DNA of 52,316 nt. It comes from Guillardia theta CCMP2712. Lineage: Eukaryota > Protista > Cryptophyta. Position numbers and translations under genes: made by a program. Where the stretch lies: the NCBI RefSeq assembly GCF_000315625.1, contig NW_005434434.1, positions 1-52,316 of the forward strand, written 5' to 3'. How positions within the stretch are numbered: position 1 is the stretch's first letter; every line of letters begins with the position of its first letter. The notes below the pieces were generated by a model, which was not told the origin of the DNA, searched no databases, and saw only the letters and a program-made list of their open reading frames with translations. Positions 40,655 to 43,600 of the stretch are shown one piece after another.

Positions 40655-43600
40655 TCACTCATTCAACAGCTTGATCTCAGCTCGCACTCTCTTCGCCTGC
40701 AGGAGCGTCAGGCCCAACCCTCCGTCTGTTTCCCGTCGGCAGAAATCTTCGTCAGTGAGCAGCAACAAAGTCTTTCCATCGACGCTGTTTGCTTCAACTG
40801 CTGCTGCCGCATCTCGAAGCCCGCACTGCAGAAACAGAGCGGCGACGTCCTTCACGCTCAGAGCATATGCTCCTTGCCCTGTATCTTCGACGCTGCCCCC
40901 CATAGCAAGTGTAAACGCAGAGGACAGCTCTTGCCGAAACTCTGCCGAATCCCTGTGCCTCCTCCTCGAGTCCTTCTGCGTCGCTCTCCTCAAGACGCGC
41001 TGCAGCCGGGGAGGAACAGAAACGAAGTAGGGAATCGTCTCCTCCTTCACTCTGCCGATCAGAGCCTTCTTCTCCTCTACTGACTTATCCAACGACCCCA
41101 GCTCGTCTCCAGCTGGGCGCGATGATCCCTGTGGATCCTGAAGGAGAAACGGAACGTATCCCAGAAGCAGCTCGTAACCGATCAAGCCCATCGCCCAGAC
41201 GTCACTCTGCACATCCCCGATGCCTGAGGTCCCGAGCAGCTGCTCAGGGCTCATGTAGAGCAACGCCGATGCTGGTTTAACCTCCAGCGCTCCTTGCGAC
41301 ATGTCCGGGCTTTCCTCGAACGGGCATCCGAAGTTCACCAAAGTCACGAGCTCGGTGGTGTCCTGCAGGATGACGTTGACGGTGTTGATGTTGCGATGTG
41401 CGAGGCCGAGGTCGTGTAGACAAGTGACGGCGTCGGAGAGCTGAAGCAAGACGTGCTGGCACTTGGACACGGAGCTCTGATCTTGCGCTGATCTTCGCGC
41501 TATCCACTGATCGAGGGAAATCCCCTCCACGAGCGTCATGATGACTATGAGATAGCCCTCAGCAAGCTCCCAACCTAAGAAGGGAGCCAAACTTGCATGT
41601 CGAACAGATGTCAACTTGTCAAGGACAGGTTGCACTTGCCCTCTGACTCGTTCTGATATACACTTGTAAAACTTGAGAGCACAACTGCTGTTAGCCCCCT
41701 CCTTCGTCGCAATGTACACTGATCCTCCTTGTCGTGCGCGAGCCTTTCTAAGGATGCTGAACTTGCCGTGCTCTTTGAGGTCACAGAGCCTAGGGACTTC
41801 GATGGGAGGGTCTGTTGGGCTGCAGGTCCCATGGCCTCCTAGCGCGAGCTCGCGCGATGCTGTTGGCTGGATCTCCCGCAGCCTCTGCATTTCGAGCGCG
41901 AGCTCCTTCAACGAGAGCCGAAAGGTATCGAGAGACTGAGACAGATGCTGCGAGTCGCTACTCCCCTCCTTTCGCTCGTTGTAGATAGAGGAGATGCGGT
42001 TCCTCAGGCTCGTTCCCTCCGACGACAGCAAACTACCGATCAAGCTCTCCAAAGCGTCCTTGGCCTCCGTCCACTTCGATCGGAATTCGTCGTGATCCAT
42101 GGAGAGGTCCTTGAAGCTAGCGGAATGAACAAACTCGTCCCTCTGATCTCTCAGTGACTCCACTGCTCGTTCCAAGCTCGACGAGTCCATGTAGCCAGGA
42201 TTGTTCACCAGAAGAGCTGAGAGCAGCGTGATGTCCCAGCTATCCATTTCGTCTTCCTTCAGCCGCTCAAGCATGGCTTTGCCCAATCTACTTCGCTGGT
42301 AGTCATTCATCCGAGAGGCTATCTCTCGCCCCGTCCTGTGGTTCCAGTTCTTGCCTGTTCTCGACTTGTAACACTTTCTCAGCACCTTCACCAAGACTTC
42401 AGTTCCCAGGCCCAGCATCAGTTTCATGTAGCGGCTGAAGTTGTCCTGCGGCGTGAAGGCTTCTACAAGAACCGGCGGGTCGGGATCATTCTTCCAGTCT
42501 ATCACCGCACCTCCTTTCGTTTCGTTCTTGAGCGAGCAGCCTTCGATGATGCAAGAGGAGGGGACAACGATCTCGAGCCCCTTCCCCTCGGCCACGATCG
42601 GTCTGAAGCACTTCTCGATCGTGCAGGTGTCCAAGCGGATTTTTTGTGCATTGAAAGGTTGATTCCAAAAGACGCGAACAGCTGATTCCTTGCAGTCTTT
42701 GATGGTTGTCTCAGATACCTTGAAGGTTGCCCCAGAAGCATGGATACCAACGTTGCAGCCTGAAATGTTCAAGTTCATAAAGTTTGCCTTACACTGATCA
42801 TTGGCCGCAACACCGATCATTGCACATTTTTCTATCGTTGAATTCTTCACGATAATTTCCTCAGCGCATGAACTTAAGACGATACCATGCCTCCCACAAG
42901 GTCCAACCCTGCAGCCGTCTACTTGAAGCCCATGGCAACCAGTATCGTTGATGCAGACTGCGGAGCCGTTGGGGCATCTGACTTCTACGTTCTTCATTGT
43001 CAAAGAACCTGACGCCAGCAACACTCCACAACAGCCACCCGAGGTAAACGGGGAGTTCTTACTCAGAGATGAAAGAGCCATGATGGAGAGAGAGTCAAGA
43101 ACAACTCCAGGAGCAGAGATTCTCAGGGCAGCAGACCCGACAGATACCAACTTGGGTATTCCCAAGGTAGCACGCGCTCCCACAATACTGCAAGGCTTTG
43201 TGATCTCTAGAGTAGCAAGAAAGTATTGAGACAACTCAGAGTTCTGGATGATGACAGTGTCGTGGGCTTGCAGCATCTCCAGCGCTAGAGACAAGGTAGG
43301 AAACTCTACCTCAACTGAAGCTCCTGACTCTGAAGGTTTTACCTCCCCTGCCTTGGCATAATGCAGCACATCTGACCCTTCGAACAGGACCGGAACTCCT
43401 CGAGGACCTTCCTTTCCCACCTTCTTTCCTGCCCTCCACTCGCCTGTCACCGTGTCTAGCACATCAATGCCTGCAGTTTGAAGAAGGCAAGCTGATAGGG
43501 CGGGACGAGGAGGGCAGGGCTTGCAGTCGAAGGCGACCATGGCGCCATGACTGGAGGTGATGGTAGCAAAGGGAAACGACATGTCAGGATCTAGATCCAT

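Follow-up and report, generated by a model that had tools for sequence, protein, structure and literature searches.

A Guillardia theta gene predicted to join a DZIP3/Swt1-like HEPN domain to a pseudokinase and a SAM domain, in analogy with RNase L and Ire1

The 52,316-nucleotide stretch of the cryptophyte alga Guillardia theta CCMP2712 analysed here (contig C240, referred to throughout as the window) carries on its minus strand a long open reading frame (ORF) whose C-terminus was proposed, from the sequence alone, to combine a HEPN domain, a catalytically dead kinase and a SAM domain. Ire1 and RNase L, central stress and antiviral enzymes of eukaryotes, each pair a HEPN nuclease with a kinase or pseudokinase. 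From N- to C-terminus the ORF runs through Ser/Thr-rich and FG repeats, a SPRY domain, a right-handed beta-helix, the HEPN domain, a linker, the kinase fold and the SAM domain, a layout that is colinear with paralogues, environmental homologues and cryptophyte homologues; translation may in fact begin upstream or at an internal Met. The HEPN-kinase-SAM module (window 40655–42469) forms the C-terminus, with all of its parts in one open frame. Pfam applied to the whole ORF returned Pkinase at aa 1632–1888 (E 6e-20), a sub-threshold SPRY, decapeptide repeats and a Nup98 GLEBS-like motif. Within the last 591 residues the only extra match was a weak HEPN_DZIP3 (E 0.0087, 16 bits against a cut-off of 27), and no SAM was detected. 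With the HEPN below threshold and the SAM missed, the domain calls of this original prediction needed independent testing, and on the evidence set out below we hold the architecture of HEPN, linker, pseudokinase and SAM with high confidence.

The identity of the HEPN domain is carried by sequence profiles. Across scans this copy matched Pfam HEPN_DZIP3 (PF18738) at E-values down to 6e-4 and with 16–20 bits, short of the gathering cut-off of 27 bits, and the same model rose above its cut-off at no locus in the G. theta genome (an assembly of 87.1 Mb in 669 contigs), so that routine annotation cannot see this HEPN. When the paralogues were scanned singly, 6 of 10 matched HEPN_DZIP3 and the others HEPN_Swt1, RiboL-PSP-HEPN or Cthe_2314-HEPN; the recurrent matches were exclusively to HEPN families, each below cut-off. 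A family hidden Markov model (HMM) made of 11 trimmed HEPN domains was searched against 1.84 billion representative proteins and retrieved 543 at E ≤0.001, including 21 at E ≤1e-30. Between ranks 36 and 150, Pfam HEPN_DZIP3 is carried by 66 of the 115 proteins, with Pfam E-values down to 3e-28, and PF18738-positive proteins were retrieved at whole-library E-values of 1e-16 to 4e-8; the partner domains in this range are TPR, Sel1, NACHT and nSTAND, and one protein is from a clam. Alignment of the family with hhalign to 20 short distant proteins drawn from the HMM matches (10 PF18738-positive, 8 HEPN_Swt1-positive) gave a probability of 99.75% and an E-value of 1.9e-27 over 136 columns, with both motifs aligned. 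Because this target set scores on HEPN_Swt1 too, we state the placement as a DZIP3/Swt1-like clade. The AlphaFold2 model of the domain, from an 11-row alignment, is all-helical (mean pLDDT 91, pTM 0.87), and its predicted fold, which agrees with the four-helix up-down core and inter-helix insert of HEPN domains, together with the DZIP3/Swt1-like homology assigns it to the HEPN superfamily. Matches to FliS and myosin, returned when an untrimmed family profile was compared with PDB sequences, were spurious, the profile still holding a coiled-coil tail, and the family alignment was trimmed for this reason.

HEPN RNases act as dimers in which two R-x4-6-H motifs form one composite, metal-independent active site, as in KEN, Csm6, Cas13 and others. 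In the paralogue alignment two blocks are prominent, WDITLL and L-R-x-x-R-N-x-x-x-H-S, and the R, N and H columns of the second are at least 90% conserved in 35 close and 115 distant homologues. A bare R-x4-H could occur by chance in about 165 residues, but here the motif, RDEFVH, aligns with near-invariant columns of the family. The original prediction was right to read it as an intact R-x4-H and placed it one base off, at 42124–42141 for 42125–42142. In the AlphaFold model RDEFVH ends the helix of model residues 97–115, just ahead of the loop to the next long helix; this is helix 3, and HEPN R-x4-6-H motifs lie at the end of helix 3, followed after the Arg by a polar residue (N, D or H; Anantharaman et al., PMC3710099). 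The Asp of WDITLL may be the acidic residue that HEPN domains conserve in helix 2, a role we infer from the same source. The family consensus is RNxxxH, with Asn after the catalytic Arg in more than 90% of members. In this copy that residue is Asp (D1495), as it is in the paralogue on contig C6, and it is Asn in the near-identical copy on contig C474 and in an 88%-identical environmental relative. We see about an even chance that the HEPN of this protein cuts RNA. Two of the findings that the original prediction had named as counting against it, the lack of a HEPN fold and an Arg and His not conserved in homologues, were examined; the fold is supported and the Arg and His are conserved.

The kinase fold is supported by structure comparisons (Foldseek E 5e-13, TM about 0.8 on the targets, against PDB kinases). 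Its best PDB matches by sequence and fold are the bacterial Hanks kinases StkP/PknB/PknA, MELK, PERK, CaMK, BRAF and NEK7, with neither Ire1 nor RNase L among the matches listed, and both lines point to a generic Hanks-type kinase rather than one specifically of the Ire1/RNase L lineage. We aligned 22 kinases, comprising this protein, its paralogues, the environmental full-architecture proteins P0001 and P0002, and cryptophyte transcripts. Twenty of them have HRDLKPxN (HYD in two), D[FV]G, a GxGGMG-type loop and an R-E alphaC motif, and against these canonical members the present gene keeps the beta3 Lys, reads HRN and NFG, and lacks a Gly-rich loop, exactly as had been claimed. ARARQGGS stands in place of GxGGMG and Val in the alphaC-Glu column. 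Five canonical features are thus lost (HRD Asp, DFG Asp, Gly-rich loop, alphaC Glu and catalytic-loop Lys); the features that remain include the SPE motif, the beta3 Lys and the catalytic-loop Asn. With both the HRD and the DFG Asp replaced by Asn, the kinase is predicted to be catalytically dead. The only other deviant among the 22 is the paralogue on contig C12 (HRNIKPVN and DIG), which is 54% identical. Since 20 of the 22 are intact, the dead kinase is a real, derived state of one sub-clade, and by its sequence motifs the usual family state is a HEPN domain with an intact HRD/DFG kinase.

The dead kinase also appears to be maintained. Relative to the C12 paralogue, dN/dS is 0.31 for the pseudokinase and 0.15–0.24 for the SPRY, beta-helix, HEPN, linker and SAM segments, with dS saturated. 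Relative to an environmental contig of 92% DNA identity, the HEPN has a ratio of 0.24 and the first 37 kinase codons, at the start of the N-lobe, have one of 0.15; the environmental relative that is 88% identical at the protein level keeps the same degenerate Gly-rich loop within those 37 codons. These ratios indicate purifying selection on every domain, the dead kinase included, and not free decay. No close orthologue with the kinase part was found outside G. theta, and for HRN/NFG the evidence is limited to the C12 paralogue and to an environmental fragment reaching no further than the N-lobe.

Some 70 residues at the C-terminus show conservation in six family members and correspond to the SAM domain that had been predicted. 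Taken alone, this copy matches Pfam SAM_1 weakly (E 0.17). Two of the six family tails reach Pfam SAM_1/SAM_2 (E 1.5e-7 to 8e-7), and a profile of all six matches the solved SAM domains of SAMD1/Atherin, ETV6/TEL, TIR-1/SARM1, polyhomeotic and SHANK, at E 1.3e-5 and weaker. AlphaFold gives five short helices with block-mean pLDDT of about 76–91. The best matches (TEL, polyhomeotic, SARM1, SAMD1) are polymerising SAMs, yet the resemblance does not by itself imply that this one would polymerise. In a 604-residue AlphaFold model of the whole module (pTM 0.54) the HEPN, kinase and SAM domains are each confident, and the linker (model residues 168–221) could be a flexible or coiled-coil connector. 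Coordinates of all features are collected in the table.

Table. Positions of the ORF and of the domains and motifs of its C-terminal module (window coordinates)
Feature	Position	Strand	Basis or remark
Whole ORF	40655..46621	minus	1,988 codons plus stop, no interruption
HEPN domain, DZIP3/Swt1-like clade (aa 1385-1549)	41975..42469	minus	AlphaFold, VIA-align, Pfam, hhalign
WDITLL motif (aa 1462-1467), other family hallmark	42221..42238	minus	Trp and Asp invariant or nearly so
RDEFVH, R-x4-H motif (aa 1494-1499)	42125..42142	minus	alignments and AlphaFold: end of helix 3
HEPN-kinase linker (~aa 1552-1605, ~55 residues)	41807..41968	minus	one long helix predicted, pLDDT <50
Protein-kinase fold, predicted pseudokinase (~aa 1612-1906)	40904..41788	minus	Pfam, Foldseek, motif comparison
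Degenerate Gly-rich loop region RKARARQGGSVYIA; family GxGGMGxVY	41708..41749	minus	motif comparison
beta3 Lys K1650 (in CALKF), kept	41672..41674	minus	invariant column K266 of alignment A6
Catalytic loop HRNINTVN (family HRDLKPxN)	41375..41398	minus	Asp to Asn, loop Lys to Asn, final Asn kept
NFG for DFG	41327..41335	minus	metal-binding Asp to Asn; motif comparison
SAM domain (~aa 1918-1988), five helices	40658..40870	minus	family-tail profile, Pfam of relatives, AlphaFold

Repeats are found both within and beside the gene. Upstream of the SPRY domain the ORF contains two long arrays of 30-base tandem repeats, of about 21 copies each (window 44374–45920), which encode FG-type and STSTASELSQ-type repeats. 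Directly downstream of the stop codon a 33-base unit is present in four tandem copies with 96% matches (window 40510–40642), presumably in the 3' untranslated region. Further along, several ORF pieces on the minus strand (window 37310–39465) resemble an intron-split group II chaperonin (CCT/TCP-1 subunit), which looks like an ordinary housekeeping gene.

Searching the genome with the HEPN segment identified 11 loci. Every family member with a named source is from a cryptophyte (Hanusia phi, Geminigera cryophila, Rhodomonas abbreviata, Rhodomonas salina, Hemiselmis rufescens and G. theta), with transcripts in Hanusia, Geminigera, Rhodomonas and Hemiselmis, and the remaining members come from environmental assemblies. 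These members were recovered by the exhaustive HMM search. An earlier word-index protein search was swamped by generic kinases, returned P0001 and P0002 as the only true full-architecture relatives and failed to find the cryptophyte members. Among the 35 closest HEPN relatives, Pkinase accompanies the domain in 16, a beta-helix in 8, SPRY in 4, RRM in 2 and La plus CCCH in 1, and the kinase catalytic loops found in this set are all HRD or HYD. La, RRM or CCCH domains adjoining the same HEPN in sister proteins provide a link to RNA. One such environmental protein (P0088, 1,381 aa) has the order CCCH, SPRY, beta-helix, La, HEPN and no kinase. Literature searches found no description of this HEPN-kinase-SAM architecture, and the passage of PMC3710099 on partner domains names neither a kinase nor SPRY nor SAM.

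The G. theta paralogues vary in how much of the module they carry. The C6 paralogue (L012, G000:C6:356500-365900, ORF 2921-6787) is 91–96% identical through the SPRY, beta-helix and HEPN domains, then diverges into a KEREEQQR-type repeat and ends with neither kinase nor SAM; this is a derivative truncated to the HEPN, or else the copy is broken. The C13 paralogue is HEPN-only. On C33 (L018, G000:C33:532700-542200) the HEPN is followed by an active kinase and a SAM domain, the kinase being split over two frames at about 3041–3086, at the boundary between the N-lobe and the C-lobe, by either a short intron or a frameshift. The C93 and C89 paralogues (L016 and L019) combine a HEPN and an active kinase without SAM and have in common a conserved C-terminal extension of about 150 residues. 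The C474 copy (L013, the whole 6,658-base contig; GUITHDRAFT_122848) encodes a protein 98% identical to that of this gene, reads RNEFVH and stops where the contig ends; if it is an uncollapsed haplotype, as may be the case, the Asn/Asp position would be polymorphic.

Taken together, the 3' end of this gene may be the output module of a cryptophyte-specific, immune-receptor-like protein that cuts RNA on assembly, a proposal for which we consider the chances evenly balanced. A trigger would be recognised by the upstream SPRY and beta-helix parts; self-association of the SAM domain, possibly aided by the linker helix and the kinase fold, would then pair two HEPN domains, and these would form the composite site at which RNA is cut. 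The ancestral form, which is still common in the family, would use phosphorylation by its active kinase to gate the response or to give a second output, in the manner of Ire1; in the present gene and the C12 paralogue, the kinase would be retained purely to act as a scaffold or switch, in the manner of RNase L. The fullest version of this reading is tentative. It holds that cryptophytes independently built an Ire1-type pairing of a HEPN RNase with an active kinase, from another HEPN family and in reverse order, and then, within that family, made the transition from Ire1 to RNase L a second time, the kinase losing its activity but staying as a scaffold, with SAM oligomerisation switching on the nuclease of a self-assembling, RNA-cutting immune effector. 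Within it, the suggestion that the kinase fold or the SAM domain controls the HEPN in an RNase L-like way, which is drawn by analogy, is about as tentative.

Several points weigh against this reading. Foldseek found no match to the HEPN model in the PDB at E ≤0.001. Exhaustive comparison with VIA-align placed Csm6 (4rgp) first, at Z 8.7 over 130 aligned residues, and returned the Swt1 C-terminal domain, sacsin HEPN, AF0298, 1wwp, Roquin and HepS at Z 5.8–6.7 (the Swt1, sacsin and AF0298 HEPNs at 6.4–6.7, or 6.2–6.7 with 1wwp included), but values of Z 6–9 are in the noise range for helical bundles and can arise by chance, so that the structure is consistent with HEPN and the sequence profiles are decisive. 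The low confidence of the linker means that nothing points to a rigid HEPN-kinase interface as in Ire1 and RNase L, and with the linker predicted to be disordered the HEPN may be wholly independent of the kinase fold. The dN/dS ratio against the C474 copy is about 1, calculated from few changes and against a sequence that may be a haplotig. RNase activity is not known to have been proven biochemically for any HEPN of the DZIP3 type. Lastly, the residue after the Arg contributes to catalysis in the KEN domain (PMC3710099), and with Asp at this position full activity of the present copy is not assured.

The last two of these points also speak for a non-catalytic protein, whose HEPN would bind RNA or protein only and which would serve as a regulator or bait, joining active-kinase paralogues such as those on C22 and C33 through its SAM domain. 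Pseudokinases do modulate active relatives, and here the kinase is dead in this sub-clade only, active paralogues bearing a SAM coexist with it, and only this copy and that on C6 have Asp beside the catalytic Arg. Against such a scaffold or decoy, the Arg and His are kept, the HEPN is under purifying selection (dN/dS 0.19–0.35), the La, RRM and CCCH neighbours in sister proteins suggest action on RNA, and Asp is among the three usual post-Arg residues of active HEPNs (PMC3710099); we consider it rather improbable, though well worth keeping in view. A decaying duplicate, in which a recent paralogue is becoming a pseudogene and both the kinase changes and the Asn-to-Asp change are relaxed drift, would fit the degraded or incomplete state of the sister copies (C6 without kinase and SAM, C13 with HEPN only, C33 with its frame break) as well as the ratio against C474. 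The 1,988-codon frame nevertheless stays open, the HRN state must be old since it is common to a paralogue only 54% identical, dN/dS since the C12 split is 0.15–0.31 in all domains, and the 88%-identical environmental relative has the same degenerate Gly-rich loop, so that a pseudogene is unlikely and we give it only a small chance. Least credible of all is an MLKL-like executioner, a helical bundle restrained by the pseudokinase through a brace-like helix and freed on oligomerisation to damage membranes or produce some other non-RNA output: the order of helical bundle, helical linker and pseudokinase is that of MLKL, the full-length protein (4btf) is among the Foldseek matches over 508 columns and its N-terminal domain compares with the HEPN model at Z 5.6, but the 4btf match reflects the kinase part only (rmsd 20, TM 0.31–0.43), the hhalign homology to HEPN is decisive, the RNxxxH site is conserved and most family members have active kinases.

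If the reading of a HEPN effector paired with a kinase fold is true, the family represents an independent second invention of the HEPN-kinase pairing and, with live- and dead-kinase versions in one genome, a natural experiment on why such nucleases became wired to kinase folds. It would also add a distant algal lineage to the animals in which DZIP3-type HEPN 'immune' proteins are found, and would expose a HEPN clade invisible to standard annotation, whose proteins are at present 'hypothetical' with beta-helix, SPRY or kinase labels only. The G. theta proteins offer tractable constructs for a first biochemical test of a DZIP3-type HEPN. The parallel to Ire1 and RNase L is well supported in sequence and fold, and the activity is a prediction.

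RNase L, the vertebrate 2-5A-dependent RNase, consists of ankyrin repeats, a pseudokinase and KEN, and Ire1 is a transmembrane protein with a lumenal sensor, an active kinase and a KEN RNase; in both, dimerisation of the kinase domain is passed to KEN through a rigid kinase-RNase interface. Like RNase L, the G. theta protein combines in one chain a HEPN-superfamily domain bearing R-[N/D]-x3-H with a kinase fold predicted to be inactive, and has an extra, separate module that could drive self-association. Unlike RNase L, its HEPN is DZIP3/Swt1-like and not KEN, and lies N-terminal to the kinase across a low-confidence linker of about 55 residues where the KEN of RNase L sits rigidly on the C-lobe. 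The kinase of the G. theta protein comes from outside the Ire1/RNase L lineage, a SAM domain forms the tail, and the sensor is formed by SPRY and beta-helix domains in place of ankyrin repeats with 2-5A. The resemblance to Ire1 is closest in those family members, the majority, that pair the HEPN with an intact HRD/DFG kinase and so are more Ire1-like than this copy; the loss of the kinase within the family parallels RNase L relative to Ire1. The family differs from Ire1 in its HEPN, in the reversed order and in having no transmembrane segment or lumenal sensor. A place in the Ire1/RNase L family was weighed and is rejected on three grounds: a Pfam scan to E 10 found no match to KEN (Ribonuc_2-5A, PF06479) in this protein, the HEPN does not follow directly on the kinase C-lobe, and the kinase is of another lineage. 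With all three of these defining features absent, the protein should not be filed in that family. Canonical KEN matches do occur elsewhere in the genome, in exon-sized pieces at G000:C559:3112-3718 and G000:C31:314196-314504, presumably the Ire1-type genes of the alga, and the HEPN-kinase family therefore adds to Ire1 and does not replace it.

By descent the nearest relatives of the HEPN are the DZIP3/hRUL138-like proteins of animals (PF18738), which have a homologous domain with the WD-x-T-L-L and RNxxxH hallmarks and are likewise multi-domain, immune-receptor-like proteins with lineage-specific expansions, those in cnidarians and molluscs with NACHT, DEATH, CARD and TPR domains. The cryptophyte clade is set apart from them by falling below the Pfam cut-off and by its partners, SPRY, beta-helix, protein kinase and SAM. 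MLKL, composed of a four-helix bundle, a brace and a pseudokinase, matches this protein, and RNase L does not, in the linear order of helical-bundle effector, helical connector and pseudokinase; the effector here is however HEPN by sequence homology and not a membrane-active four-helix bundle, a SAM tail follows, and most cryptophyte family members have active kinases. This MLKL-like order, the derived death of the kinase and the replacement of Asn by Asp after the Arg go beyond the original prediction, whose proposal of a convergent, non-homologous likeness to RNase L and Ire1 in reversed order agrees with the DZIP3/Swt1-like HEPN, the missing KEN match, the generic kinase and the N-terminal position of the HEPN. 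The nearest designs are thus RNase L and Ire1 in function and MLKL in order, with a HEPN of DZIP3/Swt1-like and a kinase of generic descent, and the sequence comparisons argue that the resemblance to RNase L and Ire1 is an analogy produced by independent fusion and not homology.

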